Positions 1-26,000 of a stretch of DNA of 64,000 nucleotides are shown here, piece after piece; the first letter of the stretch is position 1; every line of letters begins with the position of its first letter. The translations under genes were made by a program, and so were the position numbers. The DNA comes from Klebsormidium nitens. Taxonomy: Eukaryota; Plantae; Klebsormidiophyceae. The stretch is taken from positions 62,001-126,000 of the forward strand of contig DF237122.1 of NCBI GenBank assembly GCA_000708835.1, in the 5' to 3' direction. The notes below the pieces were generated by a model. It was not told where the DNA came from. It saw nothing but the letters and a program-made list of their open reading frames with translations, and searched no databases.

Positions 1-331
1 CAAGGAACAATAAGAAAGGGACTCATTGTTACAGGCACTGAGATAATATTGCCAATGATTCTTTCATGTAAGGTCATTTCTGTGATCTGTAGCGTACTTG
101 ACAATGAGCCCCCCTACTTGTAATAAATCCCGAGGCGGGATTCCAACAAAGCTATCCCAACGGATCGCAAAAAGCCTACGCTCGCCCAATCACTTGCTTT
201 TGTCGATTCGACATCCTGGATTGGACATACTTTTCTTTTGCGCTTTCTGCGCTACTAGTCGATAATACATGCTAGATTTTTGTACCCCCCCAAATTGCTT
301 CCTGAGCGTCATTCTCGATACCTTCCCCTCT

Positions 332-823
332 CACAGCGCTGCTTTCAGTACTTAAGCCGAGACCCTGTCCTCTTCCCCCTTCTTGCACTCCTAGATGAAA
401 TCTCACACGAAATACATCCTTCCACCCCCCATAATCGTCATCTCTGCCCTTTTCCACCATACAGCGCTGCCGTCAGCACGCCGAGACCCTGTCCTCTTCC
501 CCCCTCAGGCGCTCCTTAACGAGAGCTCACACGAAGTCATCCTCCACCCCCCTAAATGTCACACGGACCGTTATCCTCTGCCTCTTTCCCCCTTGCAGCG
601 CTCCCGTCAGCACGCCGAGTCCTGTCCTCTTTCCCCCTCCGGGACTCCTCAATAAAACTTCACACGACATCCTCCTTCCACCCCCATCATCTCATGCTGA
701 CCCCCTTGGGCGCTCCTTCACCAGATTTCACACGAAATTTTCCTTCCACGCCCCACATATCATACTCACCGTCATTCGCTGCCCCTTTCCCCCTTGCAGC
801 GCTGCCGCCAGCACGCGGAGACC
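332..823 (+). repeat. Degenerate tandem array of intron-3'-end plus exon-start units (3 decoy copies and the functional acceptor)
   Basis: The pattern 'cag|cgct(g/c)c..tcag(c/t)ac....gag(a/t)cc' follows AG at 336, 464 and 598 and at the functional acceptor at 799 (spacing 128, 134, 201 nt). Shared pyrimidine-rich intron text (ctgtcctcttcccc, cacacgaa, ccttccacccc) recurs between copies. Confidence 0.85.
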
Positions 824-1897
824 GGCATGGACCTCGCGCGCCAGCTTTGCACCACGGACGGCTGCGAGAAGCGCCGGCGCTACGGCTGGGCGATGAAGAA
901 GCCGATCAAGTGCCGGGAGCACGCCGAGACGGGGATGGAGAACGTCATCCCGTACGAAAAGTGCCAGGGCTCGGACGGCGACGACGTGTGTACGAAGCGT
1001 CCGAATTACGGGTGGCCGGGGCAGAAGAAGCGCACGCACTGTAAGGCGCACTGCCAACCGGGGATGGAGGATTTGAACAACAGAAAGTGCGGGTGCCCGG
1101 ACGGGACCATGGTGGGTTGCAAGCTGCGGCCGAAGTTCGGGTTCCCAGGTGAGCGGTTCGAAGATTCGGGGGCCGACTTCGCTTCAGGTTTGACATTAAC
1201 TGAGAGTGCGTTTTCGGATTCAGATTCGGACTCTGGGTTTTGGGGCAGGGTCATAGTTTCGCGTTGAGGTTCTACGTGAGGTTCGGTGCCTAGGGCTAGG
1301 ATCGACTTCCAGATTGCCTTCCTATGGCCTTTGTTTCTTGGTACGGTAGATTTGCGTAGCAGCGATTGTCGGATAGCTTGCATTGTAAAGGTGAAGAGAC
1401 GATGAGTTTCTGTCACTCCTGGCCTCACGTCACACGAAGTTGAGAGGGCGGACTCGGCCTCGTGCTACGTTCTCTCTTCCTCCCTCTCCTGCTTTTCGTC
1501 GTCCTCTGAAAGAGTACTTTTCGATTGTGTAGGCGAGAAGGCGTCCCGGTGCAAGGCCCACGCAGAAGAGGGCATGGTCGACGTGGGGCACGCTAAGTGC
1601 GAGATCGCGGGTTGCATGAAACGAACACAATATGGGTGGGCGGGGGGCGCATCCAAACCCACCCGGTGCAAAGGCCACACCGAACCTGGCATGGTAGACT
1701 TGACGAAACGGGTGTGCGCGTTTGACGGGTGTAAGGGGAAAGTTGTCACGGGCCCCCCGAAAGAGACAAGCTGGCGGTGCGAGGCGCATGCAGAGCGGCA
1801 GTCGGTGCGCGTGTTGGAGCTGCGGGCGAAGGCGGGGCTTGAGGCGCAACCGGCGGCCGGGACGCCGGCTGGGTTTGTGATGGGCGCGGTCGGCTGA
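800..1897 (+). CDS. EsV-1-7 (IMM-like) cysteine-rich repeat protein, last two exons (800-1148, 1533-1897); upstream exon(s) not identified, probably left of the window
   Basis: About 5-6 repeats of C-x2-H-x3-4-GM-x6-7-C-x3-9-C-x4-6-G, e.g. RCRQHAETGM, KCREHAETGMENV, HCKAHCQPGMEDL, RCKAHAEEGMVDV, RCKGHTEPGMVDL. The phase-1 GT-AG intron 1149-1532 joins the two ORFs in frame. Confidence 0.8.
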
Positions 1898-5927: not shown

Positions 5928-7251
5928 GATGATGCGCCTCCGCGCCTTTCTCACCACTGGCACAAGTCTAGGAATCGCCCGCAGCAGCGCAGCTCTGGAA
6001 ACAGCTCCGTATCACTATCTAGCAGATTGACCCGAGTTGACCCCAGCACCGGTGGTTCGGACCGGGTGAGTACAGTGCCGGGGGAAAGCGCCAACAGGAA
6101 CCGTTGTGCTCCGCCCGTGAGCGAAATCAGAGACGAGTGGGCCGTTTCTTGGAGGAGTGCTGAGAACCGGCTTCTAAGTGGTCGGTAGCTTAGGTCCCGG
6201 GTACCAAATTTTCACTGACGATTTTGGGTCTTATACCCTATGGCGCAACTAGGCGCTTATTGTCCATAAGGTATGAAGCTGCCAGTAGCTGATGGGGGCC
6301 ACTAGCTAGCTAGCTAGCGCTCGCTAGCTCGCAAGTTGCTGTTGCTTGGCCAATCAGCGTCGTGAGTGGCAGCTGCGTACTGGCTGTGGCTTGGCGCAGC
6401 TTGCATGCAAACTCCAACTTGCTCAGATTCTCTGCTCGTTCTCAAGCGCTCAGAGCCCCAGTGCATCTGGAGAGATCTGAACACAGAAAGAGAGCCAGTG
6501 CATGAAGCCTTCAGAAGCAGCATTCTTGTTCAGAAATGGCATCAGAAAACTTTTTGCACACCATCACGGACAAGTTTCCTTAAAAGCAGCAGCTGCAGAG
6601 GAGTTTCTGAGTTACCTTGAGCATCAGGAAAAGGAGTAAAACATATCCATGCTCATGTCCAACGCCAGCGCCAGCTTCATGCAGGCTTGATTGAAGCAAT
6701 CAAGGGAGGGCGCCAGCTCGATTTTGGCCTCAGCTTGGTCCTTGTTGGTATTGAAATTGAGGATCAAAAGAAGACTCCGTCGCAAGTAATTGTGCGCTGA
6801 TCAACCACCTGGTCAGCTCTTTGCCATTGCAAAGAAGAGTTGAAGATGGGGGCATTTGGGACCACAATTGTGAGATTCTTGCTACGATCTCTTATCTGGT
6901 GCTATTCTTGATTTTCCAGAAAGGGAGGAAGAATCTGAGAAGCCCGCCTGATCTCTATTCCAAAGATAGCATCTGGGACATCAAGATAGTCATTTGTCTC
7001 CAAACAAAAGAGAGCATGCGGTCTGCTTATCAATCTCTTGGCTTGTCAAGCAAACACCTTGAATTGAAGCACACCTCTATATTGAGATTCTATACGATCG
7101 CATGCGACGGAAGCATCTCAAATTACTCTTTGAAGGACTTTGTGTGCTCGTTCGGTCCTGGTTTTGCTTTTGAGACCCTTTGATTGACTTTGCCACCCAC
7201 TATCGCAGGATGGTCGAAGCATCGCTCTCAGTGGGGAGCCTCTTTTCCCAG

Positions 7252-10200
7252 GCTTCGACCGCAAAGAGTTCAGCAAAGCCGATAAAGATGCGGCCCGTTC
7301 ACAAAATTACTTCAAGGACAGGACGCCGAGCATCACTCTACGCAATCAGATACAGCTGTCCACCTATGGTGATGCGATCGGCGGGGACCTTGAGCATCTG
7401 AAGAAGTTCGTTGATGAGCACCTTGGAGGTGAGGACAGATTTTCTTCTGTATGACTGGTTTCTTTGCGCATGAGGTGGTGGTAGCTTTTCAAAATTTGTC
7501 ATGAAAGGTCAGCTTCTAAATAGCCTGGGTAGAAAAGGAAATGCTTTTCAGACTTCTTTCTATTCATCGATGTTGACATTCCCAGCTCATGATGCGAGCT
7601 TTGATCTTTCATGGTGTGCTCTGATCTTTCATGGTGCGGACAGGGAAGCCTCAAATCGATGCACTTTCTTATCTCCTTTGGGTTTACTATTTTGTTGCTC
7701 CTTTAGGAAAGTAATTGAGAGCAGTCTCCACTTGCAAACACTTCCATTTTGTTGCCAAGGCAATATTCACAAATATCTTAAGTGCCTTGATACTGGTACG
7801 GCTGTCTCTCTCTCGGTCATCTTGAGGGCGCCTTCGCTCTGTCATCTTGACGGCGGCTTTCTAAACTAGTCTGATGCTGCCTGCAGGCGCCTTGGGTAGT
7901 GTCCACCTGCTGCCGATATACCCCTCCTCAGGCGACAGGGGTTTTGCGCCGTTGACGTATCATCAGATCGATCCCGAGCAGGGCAGCTGGGATGATGTTC
8001 GGGAGTTGGGCAAGGAGTATGACTTGGTTCTTGACTTCATGCTCAACCACGTTTCGGCCCAGTCAAAGATGTTCAAGGACTATCTGGCCAAGGGGGAGAA
8101 GTCGGAGTATGCTTCCATGTTCATGGATTGGGACAAGTTTTGGGGGGAAGGTGAGCTGCGGCCGGCTTTGTTCAAACGGTTCGGCTTGTGAACAGAGTAC
8201 TGATGCCTGTCCAAGTTTCCCTGATGCATTGGTTGAGGCTGGGAAACGCTTTTCAGTCGTTGTCTGGTCGTTCTGATGCACTCAAGGCGCGAGGAAAGCC
8301 CGTTCATAACTCTATCGTCATTCAAGAGAGATTGCAAGCACAGATTGCGCCTGCTCATCCTTTTCTCTGCTGACATCGAAAGCACACTTGCGCTTGGTCA
8401 ACAACGCTGAGTTCCGAAAGTAAACCCATAGTAAAGGCTGGCAATGTCTTCAAGGTCGTAAGTCTTCCACATGCGTTCATAGACGTGTTCCAGGCATAGA
8501 AAATATCCAACAAAACCCGATTGGAAGATCGGGAGATGAGGGGAAAAGTAGAGCCACTGTAAGCAAAGACTTGAAAGGGACAAATGTCAATCGAAGCAGG
8601 ACAATTGACTTGAAGGCGACTGAAGAGAGAACAATCTTGCATTTTTGTGTCTCAGGTGGTCCTGGAGAGAAGGATCTCGCGAGCATCATAACACACCAGG
8701 GCGACCTTCCGATGATCGAAGTGACGCTCGAGGACGGAAGCAAGAGACGGCTTTGGAACACGTTCGGACCCGAGCAGATTGACATCGACCCCAAGTCCCC
8801 AGCAGGTAAGCAGAGTGTCGTGTCAGAGTGAGGTTATGTTGCTTAGGACGTGAACTTAAACACAAGTATCAGCATCTGAAACTTTCCGTTCTGTGAGTCC
8901 TTGACCAACTGCTCGATCGGCTCGTTTGCTTGCTCTTGGTTTTGTCCTCGAATGATATTCTGTTAGTGCTTCGTCCACGTCTCAATCTTCCTTACGCAAT
9001 TAGGCGTGGCTTGGAGAAGCCTGAGCGTGTGTCTCGACCGCTTGGCTGATTGCCCCTCACTTCAATACGTAGCCTGCATCCCACTTACTACGCTTTCTCC
9101 GCGCAGGCTGGAACTTCGTTACGAAGTCGATCAAAAACCTTTGCAGCCACGGGGTGAAGGTCATTCGGCTGGACGCCTTTGGGTGCTTCACGAAGAAAGC
9201 GGGTTCGGAGTGCTACTTTGAGGTGGGTGTACTTGATTGCAACAAACGCTTCAAGTGGACCACAGCCCGAAAAAAGCGGACTCGTTTTGTGATCAAAATG
9301 AGTAGCTTATGTTTGGCCAGTGCAGATGCGTTTGGAAGCCGAAGAAACATTAAAGTGATGGTTGACTGCTTGTGTTCACAGTTTGTCTGTATATTGTAGC
9401 GGAAAGTGTACTTGCGGTCGGTTGCCTATCTTGTTCCCCAAAGAGCTGCCCCAAGTTGTGGACACACGTCCCGAAAGCCGACTCGTGTTGCCCTGGTCGA
9501 CACTAGCTGACACGTGTTCCCTTTGCAGGAGCCAGAGGTGTTCGACATGCTGGATAGAGTGGGGAAGCTGATGGAAGAGTCTGGGACGAGGTGAGGGCAT
9601 TTTACATCGTTCCTGTTCTCAAACGCGTCTCGTGATGTTGGAGATGCAAAGGTTTTGGTATCATGCTACTCGACATGGTCCGCTGCAGTATTCGAAGACT
9701 GGGGTGCTTTTGAGTTGATTTAAATAGTCGGTAATCTGGACGGTGTTGCGCCGCTGCCGTAATCTCCCTTTGCACAGCTTGCTTCTGCTTTCTGTGCTTT
9801 GTATCGAAGCTGTTTTCTCCTTGTTGAAGCAATTCTGAGCCTGTCGGTTGGATGTGCGAAGCTTGAAAAACTTTACTGGGCCGTACATTTGTTCTTGATA
9901 TCTCGACCCTCGGAGTCAGCCCTTGGAGTCATAGTTTGTTGCCCCACTCTGTGGTTCCCTGTCTTCTGCTCTTCCGTTCGTGAAATAGATGATGAGCACC
10001 TCAACCCAGATTTGTCATATCCCCCACACGTCCTCTCGAACTCCCCATATTCCGCCCAGGTTGTCGGGCGAAGTTACCTTTGTTTCGTAAACCACTTACA
10101 TCAACAATCTCTTCCTCATTGGAATTGCGGACATACTCTTACCACGATCCTCAACCTCCGGCCAGGTTGCTGTGCGAGGTCCATCAGGACTACCGGTCCA

Positions 10201-12213
10201 ACCTGTTAACAAGTCACGTAATCAACAATTTCTCCCTGATTGGAATGTCGAACGTACTTTAACACGAGCCTCAACCTCCGGCCAGGTTGCTGTGTGAGGT
10301 TCATCAGGACTACCGGTCCAACCTGAAGATCGCGGAGCGCGGCTACTGGGTGTACGACTTCTCGCTGCCGCTGCTGGTACATCACGCGTTCCACTTCCAA
10401 ACCGCGCTCAACCTGCGCAAGTGGCTGCACATCTGCCCGCGCCGCCAGGTCACCACGCTCGACACACACGACGGCATGGGCATCGATGACGTCACAGGCC
10501 TGGCTGACGTGAGCGGCTGATCTAGCTTCTATTCCCTATTCGATTTTGTCATTGGGCGAGCCCTCAATGGCTTCACGTCTTGTCCAACTCGCTGCGCGGT
10601 TCCTGTATTAGTCGCTTACGAATGTGTTGACTAGCTCTCTCGTTCACAAACGCTGGCCGCCCATCTGCTCACAATACGACATGATCTAGCTCCGGCAGGT
10701 CTACACAGTGTTAGCTATCATACAAGCGTCAAGGCGTTTCGTCTGAGCAACCTGTTCTTTAAAACCGATTTTATGTCGCAATCGTCCGACTTGGCGCCCG
10801 CTTTCGCATGTGCTACTTGCGCATCGAGTACTTTTCTAACTACACGTCCGTTAGAAAGTTGTGACAGACACACTCGTTTCGGCTCCCTCTCTCCTCGGCC
10901 AATTTTCGTGCTTCTCGTCTCTTCCATCACGCCTTCCTTAACCCGTTGACTACTCGTACAATCTGATTGGCCGTTAAGTTACTTCCATTCCCTCCTGATC
11001 GGTTGTTGAGTTTCTCATATCCTCTCCCCTGCCAGATCTGCGACCTGCAAGAGCTGGAGAGCCTGGCCAAGGGCGCCACCACTCAGGACCTGGCGGCCAT
11101 CACGAAGAAATACTTCTACGACCCCAAGAAGGCCTCGTACGTGGACGCCGTTCACCAGATCAACAGCACCTACTACTCGGCGTGCGAGGAGGATGACCTG
11201 ACGTACCTGCTCGCGCGCGCCATCCAGTTCTTCTGCCCGGGCGTTCCGCTGGTGTACTACAATGGAATGCTGGCCGGAGTGAACGACGCGGATGCGGTGC
11301 GGCGGACCGGCGTGCCCCGGAACATCAACCGGCCGAACTACAGCTACGAGGACGCGGCGAAGCAGGTGGGTGGTTGGCCGGTTGGAATTTCAGAGTTTAT
11401 ACGGTCATTGTTCGGCAAGTCGTGAAGCCGTCTGATTGCTTGTCCGCTTTGACGGCTTGCCGGTTTGTAATCAAGTTTTGCAACAGTATAAGCTTGAGGA
11501 CGGTGGGCTGCTTGAAAGACACGCAGACGATCCTACTGTAGATGCAAATTGATGGTCAGAAACTAGTCCCAATTCATTTCCGATTCCCCGAAAACATGGG
11601 GTTTTTAAACACGATCCAAACTCGTGTTCGGACAGCGGAACTCGCAAGTGAATGCAATTTGATATGCTAAACTGTTGCTCTGTGGCGGTCCCCTGCGAGA
11701 CAAGAGCGGAACGCTTTCGTCAATTCTTCGTTGCAGAAAGGGTACAGAGGTCCAAGTAAGCACCCTCCAGCCGGTAAAAGTAAATGCCGAAGCGCACTCA
11801 CTCAACATCTCTTCTGCTCTCGAGTTGCGAGCACATTTTGGAGTTGGAGCCTTGAAGCTTGACGCAATTGCTGACGCCTTTGTTTCCTGTGGTCTTGCCA
11901 GATGCAACGGCCGGTGGTGCAGGCGTTGCGCGACTTGTGCCGCTTCCGGAACCAGCACCCCGCGTTCCAAGGACAGATCACCATCTTCGACGATGAGCCC
12001 GAACATGTTCTCAAAGTCCGGTGGGCGAACGGGAAGGACTACGCGACATTGACTGCAAACATCAAAACGCGGTCCTTCGATCTGCGGTACACTACCGGAG
12101 GCCACGAAAGTTCCCCGATCCGGTGCGTGAGGTTCCAGCGAGAAGGAGGCCAGGAGGGGTTCCCGGAGGGTGACTTTAACGAAGAAGATGTTGTCTTCGT
12201 GTGCGCGAAGTAG
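7252..12213 (+). CDS. GH13 subfamily 18 sucrose-phosphorylase-like enzyme; exons 7252-7428, 7887-8150, 8656-8805, 9107-9222, 9529-9590, 10286-10508, 11036-11365, 11902-12213; first exon(s) upstream unresolved
   Basis: The spliced translation carries the family motifs in order: NQIQLSTYGD, VHLLPIYPSSGDRGFAP, DFMLNHVS, LWNTFGPEQID, IRLDAFG (nucleophile Asp), LCEVH (acid/base Glu), YDFSLP, TTLDTHDG, QINSTYYSA, RAIQFFCPGVPLVYY, RNINR, RFRNQHPAF. These closely parallel Streptococcus/Leuconostoc GtfA as I recall it. All seven introns are GT-AG with matching phases. Confidence 0.93.
10103..10325 (+). repeat. 120-bp tandem duplication covering the 3' splice site and first 40 nt of the 10286-10508 exon of the GH13_18 gene
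   Basis: 'cctcaacctccggccag|gttgctgtg(c/t)gaggt(c/t)catcaggactaccggtccaacctg' occurs with the exon start at 10166 and at 10286. The upstream copy runs into TAA at 10260-10262. Confidence 0.93.
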
Positions 12214-13077
12214 GGAGCTCGACTGACGAGTGTTTCGCATTTAATCATTTGATGATTGACCTCTGTTGAGGGTTGCGATTCCGCATTCAAAATTGCTCGC
12301 TACTGATAAGGTAGAGACTGCACGGTGAGAGGTTGTTGCAACGTGACGCAGCTGCACGCTTCGGTACGGTTGGAAACGGCCCGCTATAACGGATGGTAGC
12401 AATTATTGCTCGCATACATCCTTGTTATAGACATTGTCATTTAGGACATAACCCTTTGAGCTTTTCAGGGTCAGGCTGTCATTTGCAGCAAGTAGTTGTT
12501 GACCTCTAGGCGCACATAATCATTCAATGCATCGCACATGCCAGGATGTGGACGTTCAAACACGGTCAAATTGACTTATCAAACACACAATAATATGTGC
12601 TCCATCTGCCGAAGGGTGTCGGTGACTACATCACTTGATTGATGATCTTTACTAATTTGCATGGAGCAGTTGAGCCGTGCAACTTCGCGAGTATGTATGT
12701 TATCACCTTTAACAATCGGATTCAAGTTTGACGGAGTCGAAAGGATGCACGTACCATGACATGATGGCAGCCCGTGCTTTCAAAGGTGAGATAACTGCTC
12801 CATGCATGGTTTCCTCGAGCCGCAATCGGCGAAGGGCTAACGAACCGCGGCGCAACAATGGACGTTGTACGTGCCTCAGTAAGATTGTCTGGTATCTTTG
12901 TACCACATGCTTATATCACCATTCTGCCTCGTGTTGTACGTTTCATCATCAAAGAAATCCCTGATCTGGTTTGGAATCTATTCTTAAATCGTCAGAAGAT
13001 ATTCGTACGGAAGTTTCCTCTCATCAGCTGCCATCGGTGTGCTGGGTCAAGTGACTCAACAGTGAGCAAAGCTCTAG

Positions 13078-18200: not shown

Positions 18201-21200
18201 TTCGTTCCCATGCCTATCTGAATCGAAGTGAAGGTACAAACATCAAACATCAAGCCGTGAACAACAATGAAAGGACGTGGTGCTCTATCTCACTTTAGAG
18301 CTAAGCCGCTATAAACAATGTTGAGAAAGACAATGTGTAGTGGGCTTCTTACTTGTGAATCTCCTGCCCCGGCCTCATCAGTGTCATCATCCACGTGGCC
18401 CCTGCGTCCAGCCCCGGCTGCGAGATTTCGAGGCCGTGCCTCTTTATCAACGCCAGATACCTGCAGAGGAATTGAATAATCTCAGAGTTCGACAACAAGC
18501 ATTGGATATATCGACGCCGGATACTTGGCCGAAGAATCCGGGTTCTTTCTGACTTTCTGGGCACGGAGTATGGAAAGAAAGTGCCCTGTCGAAGTTGGCC
18601 CCGGCAACAGCGGAGCTGGGAGCCTTTGCCCCGGATTCATGTGACACTGACTTGCACGGTTTCCAGGGACGCTTTTGCTAGCGCGCACTAAAATTCAAAG
18701 ACTTGAGTGGCCTCGCAAGTCACGATGATTTCGATAGGTGGTCCTCGACGAAGAAACGTTGACCGGTAGACACCAACCACGAACTGACATCGATGTCGCC
18801 GGTCGAGTCGTTCCAGATACAACAAAAAAGTATTAAGCAAGAAGTATCCTGTTCGCACTCCGCAGATAACGACAAAACGTGCTCGCAAGCAACTCGCTCT
18901 CGCACGGAGAGGATGTTGATACATGCTTCCGGTCGAACAAGCACACAAGAAGGGGTCGGCAAATAAATCGGAAGGATCCGGTTGTCTGCATGTCAGTCGG
19001 GGGACTGACCGGGAGGCATTGAAGTTGTCGAGGCCCAAGTCCTCGTCCCAGATGAAGATGTAATCGTACGGCTCCACGATGTCAGGGTGAAGGAAGCGCT
19101 TCGCAAACCACCTGCAGAGCAAGCGACCGGTGGATCGATGATTGGTTGATCTTTTCTGCCGCTTGATTGGCCGGTTAGCCAATGGTTTGCTTGACAGCGT
19201 CAAACATCTACCGTTGAGATTGTCGGAAAAGTTTTTAAACCGACGGCCAGCAACATTCGAAGCAGAATACTCGCATATCTAGACACCCGTGAAAGAGGAA
19301 CGGAATATTCGTTCCAGTAGTCAGAGCCTTTACAGAAGTCTCGTCGCGCTCTTTTGACATGCTGGCAATCATGCTGATGTAGAAACTATGGGTGCTCAAA
19401 GCGCCGCCAATATTCAAGCCCGAAACTCAACCGAGGCGACTCGAGCAGACGGAAGTTACAACAATTGAATTCCGCACCGGTAAGCGAAGTTGAGGTGTCA
19501 GAAAGATGTGGGCGCTCACCATTTGCTCTGCCTCTTGCCCACAATGTGGATGGCGGCGTCGAACCAGGGGGACGTATTCCACTGCTCGACGATCCCATCG
19601 TAGTGAAAGATGAGGTACACGAAGTCGGACGCCGGGAACTGCAGCGACGGGTGAGCAGGCAATCACTAGTCAGCAATCAGATCAAAAAGATTGGGAAACT
19701 TTCTGCTTCGAAAGAACGACAGAGCATATGGGCTTCTGTTTTCGCTCAGGTCACTTTTAGGGATGTCAAAAGCGTTTGTAAGCTAAAATGGTTCCCCTTC
19801 TTGCGGTCAGTCTTGCGCTAACCTTGTTTTGGATTCCTTCCCGGCACCGGCCAACCTGTCGTTCACTGTTAAATGGACGTCAGACTCAAGCGAAGGGTTT
19901 CCTTTGAAATAAAAGCCTACAGACCACCGAAGTCTCAAGCTACTCAACAAAGATCGAGGTGCCTCCCCTCCTCGATACTTGAACCATAATCCTCGCCTCT
20001 TATTGACGGAAAAGCATCGTGCCCCTTTCAACAAGGCGAGGCAATAAGCCAAAGATAAGAATGCCGGTTCGTCACCTTCCCGATCGCGCCGACCACGTTT
20101 CTTTGAAGCGAAACATAAAAGTAACAACGTGCTTCCCTTTCAAAAGAGAAACCTGCCTCCAATCGAGACGAAAATGAGAGCTTCTCTTGAGTAACTTCGG
20201 TGGCTCACCTTCTCAATCATGTTGTCAACATTCTCCTTCTGCTGGATCCCCGCCGTGATCACCAGCAGGTTGCGCGGCTGCGACCCCTGCAGGTCCTCCT
20301 CAGGACGCCCCCAAAGGCGCCGGAGATAAAAGTCGCTCGTGCTCGCCACGATCTGGGGGGGCAGGATGCGCGCCTCGGGGGGTATCCGGAAGTCGGTGTG
20401 CGGGTCGAGGGGCTGGGAGGGGGCCTGCGAGAGGGCAGGGGAAATAATTCATTTCAAGGTCGGTAGTGTCTAACGAGTCTTCCTTTTGAAGGGATCTACC
20501 AGACAAGACCCCTGAGCAGTTGAGGCTAGTGGTTGGACGCGTCACAAATACGCATTTGTCCTGAAATGGTGTCCATCATTTGATGCGCTGCAGCATGGGA
20601 GTGCGTAGGTACGAAGCTGAAGGCACAACGGCGTCCTAGTGAACTGTTAAATCGTAGTTTCAACAAGTCCCCACAGGACCAGGTGACCACCGGATCATCA
20701 ACTGTCACTCGGATGCAACATTGATCATGCTGATATGGAGCTTTCTGTAGCTTGGACCTTGAAACCCGTTTCAAGTAGGAAAACGAACTCCCTGGAAAGT
20801 TCGTGAAAAAAGGACCCTTTACATTAGGGGCAGTGCCTCAGTCAACCTTAGAAAGTACACCAGTTGAAAATGAATCAGAAGTTATATGCGACGTTCTATC
20901 ATCACGGGCACACATCGAAATCAATCAGCTTTGTAACGAGTGATGGGCAGCCCCCCGTGTCGCAATTCCATCTTCAGGACCCAGTCTTGAAAAAGAAAAA
21001 ATCCGAAATGATTGTGCATCATGAACAGTCAGCTCAGATAAGCGACTCGATTTGCAAAGCACGTCACGTACCTCAAGTGAAGCAGCTTCTGGCGCTATGT
21101 CTAAGCGGCCAAGTTTGGACCATGGCTGCAGAACAAAGAATAAAGATCAGGCACTGCCTGCGCTCATCAGTTCAAACATAAAGATAAACCCCTGATAACG

Positions 21201-23018: not shown

Positions 23019-26000
23019 ATGCAGATAGACTCCGACAACTCTCGAGGGGGCCGCGGGCCCGTCTGGCGTGGAGGGGGGCGCTCCGCCGGTCGCAGCGGGG
23101 GCAGGAGCGGGGGTGGCACCGCAAATGTCCCCTGCCGGTTCTTTCTGGAAGGGAAATGCGAGCGGGGGGACGCCTGCAATTTCTCGCACAACGTCGACCC
23201 AGGAGCAGTGGCCAATGGACGGAAACGAATCTCGGAACGGGGGCCGGCGGCGCACGACCCGCGGCCCGGGGCGTCATTTGGCGGCGGTAGAAATGGGTTG
23301 GGGCCGAGTGGCAGCGCCTTTGATCGGTTAGGTGGTCAAAGTGGTCAAAGCCCGTTTGATCGCCTAGGGGGAGGCGCTCCGCAGGCGCCGCCGGCGGCGG
23401 GGTCTGGGTACGGTGCTTATGGAGGGGGGGGGATGCAAAACGGGGGGCAAGGGGGCAGGGGCCAGCAGGCGCGGTTTGGGCGGCGAGGGGGGGGTGCCGG
23501 GAGGAGTGGGCCGCAGCAGCAGAAGCGGGGGGTGTGCCGGTATTGGCTGGGCGGGTCGTGTAGAAACGGGGCGAATTGCAACTTTTTGCACGTGCACGCG
23601 ACAGCGCCGGACGTGGACCTTATGACAGAGCTGAAAGGGCACGAAAAGGCGAGGTTATTGGCCAACTTAGTGTGATGAAGGATTGAAATCTATCAAAGAA
23701 GAGGGGTTCCATCAGGTTTGGGTGTATGGCGCAAAGTGGGTGGTTTGTTCAATTGGTGGTAATGGTGGCACCTTGGATTTTGAACTTGCAATCTGGAAGT
23801 TAGACCTGTGGTAGTGACGGCTGTACACGAACTGTGGCGCGCCGGTTGATCGTCTCTCGTGCTGTCAGATTCATATCCGAAATATATTCTGCAATAGTGT
23901 TTGAGAAGAATTGATTCTTGTTTCCGCATATGGGTGCCTTGCTGGGTGACACGTAGACAAGAAAGCCTTTGCTGGCCAGTGGAACCCTAATTTGGCTTCG
24001 CTAGTTTCTTGCACCTACAGTTTTAGTGATGGTGTTGTTCCTATTGCAATTGTCATGAAGCAGACCCAATTGATGCACCACTCGTAGTATCAGATTTATT
24101 AGATTGTCAAAAGGTTTCACGGTGAATCGTGCATCTGGAATCGGCGCTTTCTGAAACTTTTTCCAACCTTCTACCCGAGCACTCCAGAATCAAGCATCAT
24201 CTGCATGGTCCTGTCATCCAATGCTGCCACTTTTGTGCCCATTCTGAAAGTAATTCGCTCAGCACTCCTCGTCCTTAGTTGCTAAGAGAAGCCATTCCCA
24301 GACTCTGTGTATGTAATACTGACAATCCTTGTTTGCTGCATCGATGCAGGCGGTTCGGGCCATTGCCTTGCCTGCGGGTTCAAGCGAATTGTATACCGGG
24401 AGTCAAGATCAGTCTATACGTGTATGGGACTGTGAAACTGGGCAGGTGCGGATCCCTCTTCTTCTATCAGTTGTTTTGACGAAGCAGCTCGAAGATTTTA
24501 GCTGGGTCCCTGATCAAGTGCAAATTTGTACCATTATGAGGGTCCTGTGCTGATGCTCATCGGAGGAAGTTTGCTTTATTTTTCAAATTGATGTGGCGGG
24601 CTAGATCGGTAGCTCCGTATGAGTGTTACGAGCAGTATCATATCTGTTTACCGTTGTTTTGATTGCACTTTAGGGATAAGTGCGGCGATTAGTCAGCAAA
24701 TTTGCACGATTTGCAAATTACCGTTGTTTCGAATGCTTTTCTAGAGATTAGTGCTGCGATTAGTCAGCAATGATTTGCAAGTGACATGCCTAGTCACACT
24801 TTCTATTGCACATTCTGAGTTTCTTGCCGTCCTTGCTTGTGGACAGTGTAAAAGCGTCGTGCCGATGGGTGGGGATGTGGGGGCCCTGCTGACAGAGGCC
24901 GGGTTCTTGTTTGTGGGTTTACCAAATGAAATTAAGGTGAGTTCTCGCGTTTACGGGACGAAAAGAAGGTGAAGAGTTGGCAGTCTGGTTTATTGACTAG
25001 CGCTGATCCGTTTACACCCATGACAGAGGCAGGACCAGAAGTGGGTCAGATTCATGGGTCAGCATGTCTTCTTTGCTAGGAAGTAATGCGCTTTCGGTTC
25101 AGAACAACTCTACTAGAGCGGAATGCATCGAAGATTTAGCCTGAAGCCCCAGTCATAGTCACGTGACTCTGTTGGCTCGCACAATATATGTATGCTCTGT
25201 CGGACTCCATTGTTCACTACATCCTTTTGCCATTCTTTGGTCCCTGAATCGGATCCTGCCTGTCCTGATTCGGACCTGGACATGCGACTTAGTCCTTGTT
25301 TGCTATCCCAAGCTTGCTCGAGAACTGCCATTCTGGTTTATTAAAATGCAAGTTCTCACCGTCGTCAGTCTTTCGTCAAACTGAGTCTGTCTGTGCCCGC
25401 AGGTCTGGAACATGCAGAGCGCCCCTCCAGCCCAACACAGCCTCCCGGGTCACGTGGGTCAGGTCCATTCGCTTGCGGTCGGAAACAACATGCTCTTCAG
25501 TGGAGCCCAGGTGCGTCTTTGAACGAACTTTTCGAAGATTGCTGTTCACAAAAGTCGTCCTTGGGCGGCGAACGGTTCCTCTGATTAGCTTACATTAAAG
25601 AAGGCAGTTTCGTTGAGACGCAAGCGATCGGAGGCGATCTTCAGGCTGGCCTTACGTTCGGAATCGATCTGGTCCGACCCTAAGAGTTGAGGAGGGGTTG
25701 CGGGCCTCGACATGCCGAAGCTTTCCGTGGAAGGGCTGTCTTCGGGACCTTCAGTCGCTTTCGTAACGTGCTACTGTTCTTTACATATCGGAACTTGGAT
25801 CGGTCTCTCAATACTTTCTTTTGGGCTATGCTCCTCGACGTTTGTAAGCATGATTTACGGCGTCAAGAGTATTCTCTCCGTTTCTTAGTCCCTATGGTTC
25901 CTTCTTATGCTCGATGAGGTTGGAAGAGGGTGTTGTTGGCATTCGAAGAAGGATAAGTAGTTTCCTTTTGTCATATGTCTCTGTACATCGAAGAGGGTTA

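Follow-up and report, generated by a model that had tools for sequence, protein, structure and literature searches.

A GH13_18 enzyme of Klebsormidium nitens with an intact catalytic centre and a remodelled acceptor site

We analysed a stretch of 64,000 nucleotides from the alga Klebsormidium nitens (contig DF237122.1, positions 62,001 to 126,000), here called the window, and one gene in it that encodes an enzyme of subfamily GH13_18. The enzyme retains the catalytic centre of its subfamily, its acceptor site is changed at positions that hold phosphate in solved relatives, and it probably does something other than what its database name, "sucrose phosphorylase", says. Six-frame reading of positions 7000-12600 gave pieces of a GH13 enzyme split by stop-rich spacers, and joining these pieces at GT..AG sites produced an open frame, corresponding to a nine-exon gene on the plus strand (CDS 6846-12213; GT..AG introns) with a product of 566 amino acids (Table 1). 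This product is identical to P0169, which is named "sucrose phosphorylase [Klebsormidium nitens]" in NCBI/UniRef. All eight splice joints are present in assembled contigs from four sequencing runs belonging to four studies; thus, the gene is transcribed and spliced as modelled. No intron-containing form at comparable depth was seen in the contigs of those four runs. The locus is a functional, transcribed nuclear gene of K. nitens. A first-pass annotation of the window had read the motifs of such an enzyme directly from the DNA, and each codon that it cited for loop B, for the GAC of the nucleophile, and for loop A was found in its place, with CEVH at the start of the exon beginning at 10286, THDG in the same exon, GDRGF and NH in the third exon, and WNTFGPEQIDID in the fourth.

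The whole protein scored 496.9 bits against the NCBIfam model TIGR03852 (cut-off 334.4), and each exon matched the model as well. Proteins carrying the motifs of glucosylglycerol phosphorylase (GGoP) or of the sucrose-6F-phosphate phosphorylase of Thermoanaerobacterium thermosaccharolyticum (TtSPP) also pass TIGR03852; thus, the model defines the subfamily and not a specificity. The closest solved sequences found by HMMER all belong to GH13_18 (7QQJ, 7QQI, 6S9V, 7XDQ/7XDR, 9J1U, 1R7A/2GDU, and 6S9U). An AlphaFold2 model built on a 57-sequence alignment had a pLDDT of 88 and a pTM of 0.89, with weak confidence only at residues 1-49 and in part of 350-370, and with values of 83-95 in loops A and B. 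The model shows a (beta/alpha)8 barrel together with a C-terminal beta domain and lies nearer to GH13_18 than to other GH13 subfamilies: the top 20 Foldseek matches were all GH13_18 (TM by target 0.85-0.96), with glucosylglycerol phosphorylases of Marinobacter as the best, and amylosucrases came next at ~0.62. The gene model, the TIGR03852 score, and these fold matches bear out the first reading of the locus as a eukaryotic GH13_18 enzyme.

Aligned to the solved members, the protein has the nucleophile (D242, in RLDA), acid/base (E283, in EVH), and stabiliser (D341, in THDG) of the subfamily. In the 57-sequence alignment R240, D242, E283, H285, H340, D341, Gln394 (equivalent to Gln345), and Arg452 (equivalent to Arg399) are invariant, as are the NH and F/Q/D motifs of the glucose subsite. 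The −1 subsite is conserved at D98, H136, R240, H340, R452, and F206, the equivalents of Asp50, His88, Arg190, His289, Arg399, and Phe156, residues whose roles have been described (PMC7178133, PMC11787520). The catalytic triad and the glucose-subsite motifs are therefore intact, as the annotation had held, and with them the machinery for forming the glucosyl-enzyme.

We compared the protein with 198 bacterial and 17 chlorophyte full-length relatives. Cys282 for Pro, Gly245 for Ala, and, of greatest note, His393 for Tyr344 are among the changes that the entire algal clade has in common. Eleven further changes occur in Klebsormidium only (Table 1), at sites that are at least 85% conserved in the bacteria; in the chlorophytes nine of the sites show full conservation, and S305 and H311 show 88-94%. 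Among these sites the loop-B Arg, Lys/Arg135, and Tyr196 are similarly conserved in the relatives, and all three are replaced in Klebsormidium only. None of the 198 bacterial or 17 chlorophyte relatives has the resulting loop B, IITHQGDLP. In loop A, VDAVHQ, the length and pattern match the GGoP sequence VGAIYQ, and the His-Gln ending is that of the TtSPP sequence GFDVHQ. Position 342 is Ala if one counts backwards from Gln345, and also where HMMER aligns the loop to TtSPP and GGoP without a gap, whereas in HMMER alignments to two sucrose phosphorylase structures a one-residue gap pairs the Asp of VDAVHQ with Asp342; the assignment at 342 therefore depends on the alignment. Of the residue calls in the first-pass annotation, Ile at Tyr132, Gln at Arg135, Cys at Tyr196, and His at Tyr344 stand, and Ala at Asp342 stands only in some alignments. 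The annotation had also called the loops unprecedented, a description that suits loop B and the +1 combination, which are unlike any characterised clade, but not the His-Gln of loop A, which every green-algal relative has, as do TtSPP-like bacteria (GFDAHQ, GVDVHQ) and one bacterium (MPHQ) with a protein like the sucrose phosphorylase of B. adolescentis (BaSP). In one very divergent bacterial protein of 500 amino acids (P0099), on a long branch of the tree described below, a loop B of BaSP type (FYRPRPGLP) stands beside a loop A like that of the algae (MPHQ).

Several of the replaced residues have known roles. Published loop-A fingerprints are N(L/V)D(I/L/V)YQ for sucrose phosphorylase, GFDVHQ for TtSPP, and VGAIYQ for GGoP (PMC7178133); the family motifs that the annotation had given, and the action of Arg135 and Tyr344 on phosphate, are correct by this source. 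In BaSP, the affinity for phosphate is set by Arg135, Leu343, and Tyr344, and Gln345 binds OH3 and OH6 of fructose (PMC7178133). In the M. salinexigens glucosylglycerol phosphorylase (MsGGP), the phosphate of glucose-1-phosphate (Glc1P) is held by the loop-B residue Arg131 and by Tyr335, Gln336, His233, and Arg390; Tyr194 and Arg131 bind free phosphate (PMC11787520). In TtSPP, sulfate is held by Tyr201, Arg134, and His344 (PMC6720575), and His344 binds the 6F-phosphate (PMC7178133, PMC6720575). The loop-B Arg also closes the pocket entrance in solved GH13_18 complexes. Because the Arg, Tyr196, and Tyr344 hold phosphate in solved complexes, it is reasonable to expect that handling of phosphate or of the acceptor is changed in the window's enzyme. 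Engineering results point the same way: TtSPP R134A has an opened entrance and accepts large acceptors, and the BaSP variant R135Y-D342G-Y344Q-Q345F acts as a transglucosylase that forms nigerose (PMC7178133). That the enzyme has a new acceptor specificity or a weakened use of phosphate is, in our view, a well-founded lead.

The database name implies an ordinary sucrose phosphorylase (EC 2.4.1.7), in which the loop changes would be neutral or compensated and sucrose would enter glycolysis as Glc1P and fructose. Besides the entry in NCBI/UniRef and the pass of TIGR03852, this explanation can draw on the nearest solved structure by sequence, which is a true sucrose phosphorylase, the LmSP-like enzyme of Jeotgalibaca ciconiae (7QQJ; E 1.8e-128, ~40% identity, TM 0.93) with the same catalytic triad, −1 subsite, and domain order; on the treatment of the algal clade as sucrose phosphorylase (PMC13315243); on co-regulation with sucrose genes in K. 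dissectum (PMC6691101); and on the retention of Gln345, the fructose OH3/OH6 ligand of BaSP. However, where LmSP-like bacteria have IYKRK(P/D), RLDAFAY, LPE(I/V)HE, and NLD(I/V)YQ, the window has IITHQG, RLDAFGC, LCEVHQ, and VDAVHQ, in addition to a 50-residue N-terminal extension and eight introns. The protein thus lacks the N(L/V)D(I/L/V)YQ fingerprint, and at the phosphate and fructose site Tyr132, Arg/Lys134-135, Tyr196, and Tyr344 are all replaced (I181, H183, Q184, C246, and H393). TIGR03852 is passed equally by proteins with GGoP or TtSPP motifs and is no test of specificity, and change followed by fixation at eleven near-invariant sites is unlike neutral drift. We consider an ordinary sucrose phosphorylase unlikely.

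In a maximum-likelihood tree (LG+C20+F+G4, 60 rows, with bootstrap values not fully settled), built without the solved-structure sequences and with clades labelled by the published loop-A fingerprints, the algal sequences formed one clade (100/100), nested among LmSP-like bacteria and apart from the TtSPP-like and GGoP-like groups; support for its bacterial sister, P0077/P0297, was only 57/93. This green-algal clade holds the nearest full-length relatives of the window's protein (46-54% identity), which are annotated as sucrose phosphorylase or hypothetical and have RLDA(F/Y)G, LCEVH, THDGMGIDD, His344-Gln345, and the N-terminal extension in common with it. The chlorophytes, however, keep IRTRKP (with Arg134 and Lys135), Tyr196, EVHE, INRH, and a loop A of the form G-x-P-H-Q, all of which are lost in Klebsormidium. 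That K. nitens, Coccomyxa, and Sphaeropleales have the gene, and that it came from bacteria, was published in 2026, as sucrose phosphorylase (PMC13315243), and to this extent the annotation's view of an undescribed system is overstated. In the literature searched we found no paper on the altered acceptor site, on its restriction to Klebsormidium, or on its upkeep by selection, and none that characterises any algal GH13_18 enzyme; a search on Klebsormidium glucosides gave nothing specific. Already known are the gene itself, the eukaryote that carries it, and its descent from bacteria; a new activity is not yet demonstrated.

The enzyme could instead be a sucrose-6F-phosphate phosphorylase of the TtSPP kind (EC 2.4.1.329; sucrose-6F-phosphate + phosphate <-> Glc1P + fructose-6-phosphate), acting beside the plant-type sucrose-phosphate synthase/phosphatase pathway. 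Its loop A ends in V-H-Q like that of TtSPP (6S9V), with an ungapped alignment there and a TM of 0.93, and in TtSPP His344 binds the 6F-phosphate; the loop-A exon scores best against 6S9V; and the chlorophyte relatives keep Arg134, the Tyr201 equivalent, and His344. In Klebsormidium only the His-Gln of this set of motifs remains, whereas His, Cys, and Ala take the places of Arg134 (in FLRR), Tyr201, and the Asp of GFDVHQ, so that of the three ligands only one is left; the loops have also gained Asp187 and Asp390 and are less basic. TtSPP also belongs to a different clade: the TtSPP-motif proteins P0028, P0054, and P0122 group with P0065, which has the GGoP motif, away from the algal clade. Because the algal clade lies outside the TtSPP-like clade, its His344 is of independent origin and convergent with that of TtSPP. 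We regard this reaction as improbable for the window's enzyme.

The remaining characterised specificities fit no better. The Marinobacter GGoP structures (7XDQ/7XDR, 9J1U) have the highest structural similarity to the model (TM 0.94-0.96, rmsd about 2 Å) and share with it the loop-A pattern V-x-A-(V/I)-x-Q and the sequence RLDAFG. Compared to 2-O-glucosylglycerol phosphorylase (EC 2.4.1.359), however, VDAVHQ has only V, A, and Q in common, and Arg131, Tyr194, and Tyr335, which GGoP keeps and which bind glycerol and phosphate (PMC11787520), are all replaced. The 2-O-glucosylglycerate phosphorylases have Glu at Gln345 and a (T/S)ETN acid/base loop (PMC7178133), whereas the window has Gln394 and CEVH. 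Taking these comparisons together, we lean towards a specificity that differs from that of every characterised clade.

The chlorophyte relatives P0152-P0167 (Coccomyxa, Trebouxia, Apatococcus, Myrmecia, and Tetradesmus) deserve separate mention. All have IRTRKP, Tyr196, and G-x-P-H-Q, and thus the three residues that hold the 6F-phosphate in TtSPP, along with a very basic loop B. They may be sucrose-6F-phosphate phosphorylases, for which UDP-glucose would not be needed to form sucrose-6-phosphate from Glc1P and fructose-6-phosphate. In several of them the N-terminus is long, rich in Ser/Ala/Arg, and, by eye, resembles a plastid transit peptide.

Three further loci with the exon structure of the window's gene came from fragment searches and contig look-ups: L023 (a Logan contig, ~95% alike in amino acids), L022 (a contig from a Joint Genome Institute (JGI) metagenome, ~80%), and L001 (a partial contig, ~88%). 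Despite diverged flanks, IITHQGDLP, RLDA(F/L)GCF, LLCEVHQ, THDG, and YVDAVHQ are kept at all covered positions, with IITHQGDLP identical in L022 and L023 and GCF kept in L001, L022, L023, and the fragment P0366; the same loops also occur in the fragments P0363, P0365, and P0366. Nei-Gojobori estimates of dN/dS over 526 codons were 0.09 (dS 0.38), 0.08 (dS 1.3), and 0.06 (dS 1.5), with dS near saturation at the upper end. Strong purifying selection acts on the gene, its derived acceptor site included, and its function is maintained, with no decay.

Two other gene types were found on algal contigs from the same two JGI metagenomes as L022. The first (L002:3101-10669, also L003) reads IRCRNNKEP, RLDAFGYF, CEVHE, SIDHQ, and INRH, and L002 keeps Arg134, Tyr196, and His400. 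The second (L024:4695-9024) reads HSFRA, GCC, CEVHL, and ENIHD, in which Gln345 is replaced by Asp, and has two apparent frameshifts and a long branch. Support for the grouping (L002,(L024,window type)) was 100/99 and 100/98. Most simply read, Klebsormidium-type algae would have a small gene family of a conservative copy, a remodelled copy (the window's), and a probably decaying copy. The window type arose within this algal subgroup of three types, which would be products of duplication in that lineage. The gene descends from bacteria, its GH13_18 ancestor having been acquired by a forebear of the green algae or passed between algae.

Another explanation would make the window's gene a decaying or non-catalytic copy, left over from horizontal acquisition, its acceptor site broken and its enzymatic role lost. 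In its favour, replacements have struck many near-invariant residues of the family, and L024, with its two frameshifts and very long branch, is a related locus. However, nothing in the reading frame, the catalytic triad, or the −1 subsite is broken, transcripts with the right splice joints come from four studies, and the structure model predicts the fold with confidence. Moreover, dN/dS is 0.06-0.09 over 526 codons at near-saturated dS and the derived residues are identical across four loci, results that exclude a relic; we hold this explanation to be extremely improbable.

If the enzyme has a specificity of its own, it would still form the usual covalent beta-glucosyl-enzyme from an alpha-glucosyl donor, the likeliest donors being sucrose, the alga's main soluble alpha-glucoside, or Glc1P. 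The difference would lie in the +1 site, which takes the acceptor and which here has His183, Gln184, Cys246, the clade-wide His393, and a loop A of GGoP length. The pocket would be more open or wider and less basic, phosphate would be a poorer acceptor, and the preferred acceptor or leaving group would be altered. The enzyme would then be one of two things, a phosphorylase acting on a new alpha-glucoside or a transglucosylase/hydrolase that starts from sucrose; should the specificity differ from the characterised ones, we would give roughly a third of the weight to a largely phosphate-independent transglucosylase/hydrolase and the remainder to a phosphorylase of another glucoside. The fuller account, in which the Klebsormidium copy became, after entry and duplication, an enzyme of undescribed specificity, either a largely phosphate-independent sucrose transglucosylase/hydrolase or a phosphorylase of an unrecognised algal alpha-glucoside, is tentative.

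Several points weigh against a new specificity. His183, Gln184, and His393 together could still bind phosphate, and TtSPP is a working phosphorylase with His344. Gln394, His285, and Arg452, further phosphate contacts in MsGGP, are kept. In desiccated K. dissectum, a "sucrose phosphorylase" transcript increases along with genes of sucrose synthesis (PMC6691101), which fits ordinary sucrose metabolism equally. The ~215 full-length relatives that we compared are those nearest the algal clade and not the whole subfamily, and L002 and L024 are metagenome contigs from the two samples that contain L022, possibly but not certainly paralogues in one genome.

Upstream of the gene lies an EsV-1-7 cysteine-repeat gene, which is also present in two of the orthologous loci (L022:862-1263 and L023:4378-4815); judged from these contigs, the neighbourhood is syntenic across Klebsormidium-type genomes. 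A pseudogene or contamination was considered and ruled out by splicing, by synteny with the EsV-1-7 gene in L022 and L023, and by dN/dS. No operon-like metabolic partner was found among the neighbouring open reading frames (ORFs) of the window, where the only matches were to DUF707 and CCCH zinc fingers (Table 1). A scan of metagenome contigs with the loop-B exon, in a collection evidently without the JGI samples of L022, returned only bacterial LmSP-like genes with 47-53% identity over the exon, along with two short partial matches (65-76%), bacterial too. A search of the whole library with the loop-A exon gave mostly fragments (entry points P0001-P0005 and P0014).

Two further features of the gene concern its borders and its N-terminus. 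A tandem duplication takes in the last part of intron 6 with its AG acceptor and the first 40 nucleotides of exon 7. Only the downstream duplicate is spliced (joint 9590->10286), and a loose end in X17 matches this downstream copy; the upstream duplicate, if spliced, would lead into a stop codon, and assembled RNA contigs break at the repeat. Introns of L022 also contain degenerate extra exon starts (10142-10222, 11846-11884, and 12021-12140), once for the region of exon 7 and twice for the start of exon 8, and duplication at intron/exon borders may be recurrent in this gene. Residues 1-49 are predicted to be disordered, with low pLDDT in the AlphaFold2 model. Within the first 50 residues, encoded at 6846-7360, the N-terminus MGAFGTT is identical in L023 and fits the N-myristoylation pattern MGxxx(S/T), and a motif GEPLFPGFD..K..AARSQ.YF.DR.PS is common to all three Klebsormidium-type gene types (the window type with L022 and L023, L002, and L024).

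Table 1. Exons and other features of the window, and residues changed in Klebsormidium only. Positions are nucleotides of the window; the last column gives the basis of each feature or, for residues, the state in the relatives.
Feature	Position	Strand	Basis or state in relatives
Exon 1: start codon, MGAFGTTI	6846-6869	+	Pattern search (ATG then GT donor); joint 6869->7209 in spliced contigs of 4 runs; matches P0169 N-terminus
Exon 2: N-terminal extension (GEPLFPGFD... motif), barrel start (RNQIQLSTYGD)	7209-7428	+	Joined frame, RNA joints
Exon 3: glucose subsite, GDRGF (Asp50 equivalent) and NH (His88 equivalent)	7887-8150	+	N135 and H136 invariant, D98 nearly invariant
Exon 4: loop B IITHQGDLP (8685-8711), WNTFGPEQIDID	8656-8805	+	Joined frame, RNA joints
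Exon 5: nucleophile segment RLDAFGCF (Asp242 codon GAC, 9172-9174; Cys246 replacing Tyr196)	9107-9222	+	Joined frame, RNA joints
Exon 6: EPEVFDMLDRVGKLMEESGT	9529-9590	+	Joined frame, RNA joints
Exon 7: acid/base LLCEVHQ (Glu283, His285), stabiliser LDTHDG (His340, Asp341)	10286-10508	+	E283, H285, H340, and D341 invariant
Exon 8: loop A YVDAVHQ (11138-11158; His393, Gln394), INRP (Arg452 = Arg399 equivalent)	11036-11365	+	Alignments, RNA joints
Exon 9: C-terminal beta-sheet domain, stop TAG (12211-12213)	11902-12213	+	RNA joints, model
Tandem duplication, ~120 bp	10100-10325	+	Copies 94% and 79% alike, spacing 120-121
EsV-1-7 cysteine-repeat gene	1-1897		
DUF707 ORF	18691-19203	-	E 1e-17
ORF with two CCCH zinc fingers	23019-23672	+	
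I181			Tyr132 in bacteria, Arg in chlorophytes
H183			Loop-B Arg, 97% of 198 bacteria and 17/17 chlorophytes
Q184			Lys/Arg135
C246			Tyr196
S253			Thr
Y256			Phe
F263			Trp
S305			Ala
H311			Leu
P/R453			His
D459			Glu

The gene is a sound target for biochemical testing. GH13_18 enzymes are workhorses for glucoside synthesis from sucrose, and earlier new specificities in the subfamily (sucrose-6F-phosphate, glucosylglycerate, and glucosylglycerol) were each found through odd acceptor-site loops. If the enzyme proved to be an ordinary sucrose phosphorylase instead, the canonical phosphate ligands would be dispensable, a result still of note to enzymologists. If the proposed change of specificity is true, nature would have arrived at the kind of changes (loss of Arg134/135, Tyr196, and Tyr344) that engineers introduce to open the acceptor site, and a naturally opened, phosphate-poor acceptor site kept by selection would be a ready template for transglucosylation. 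An acquired bacterial gene would have taken on a new function in a eukaryote, with three apparent gene types (little changed, changed, and probably decaying) available for comparison, and a desiccation-tolerant relative of land plants would have an unrecognised glucoside or route of sucrose use.

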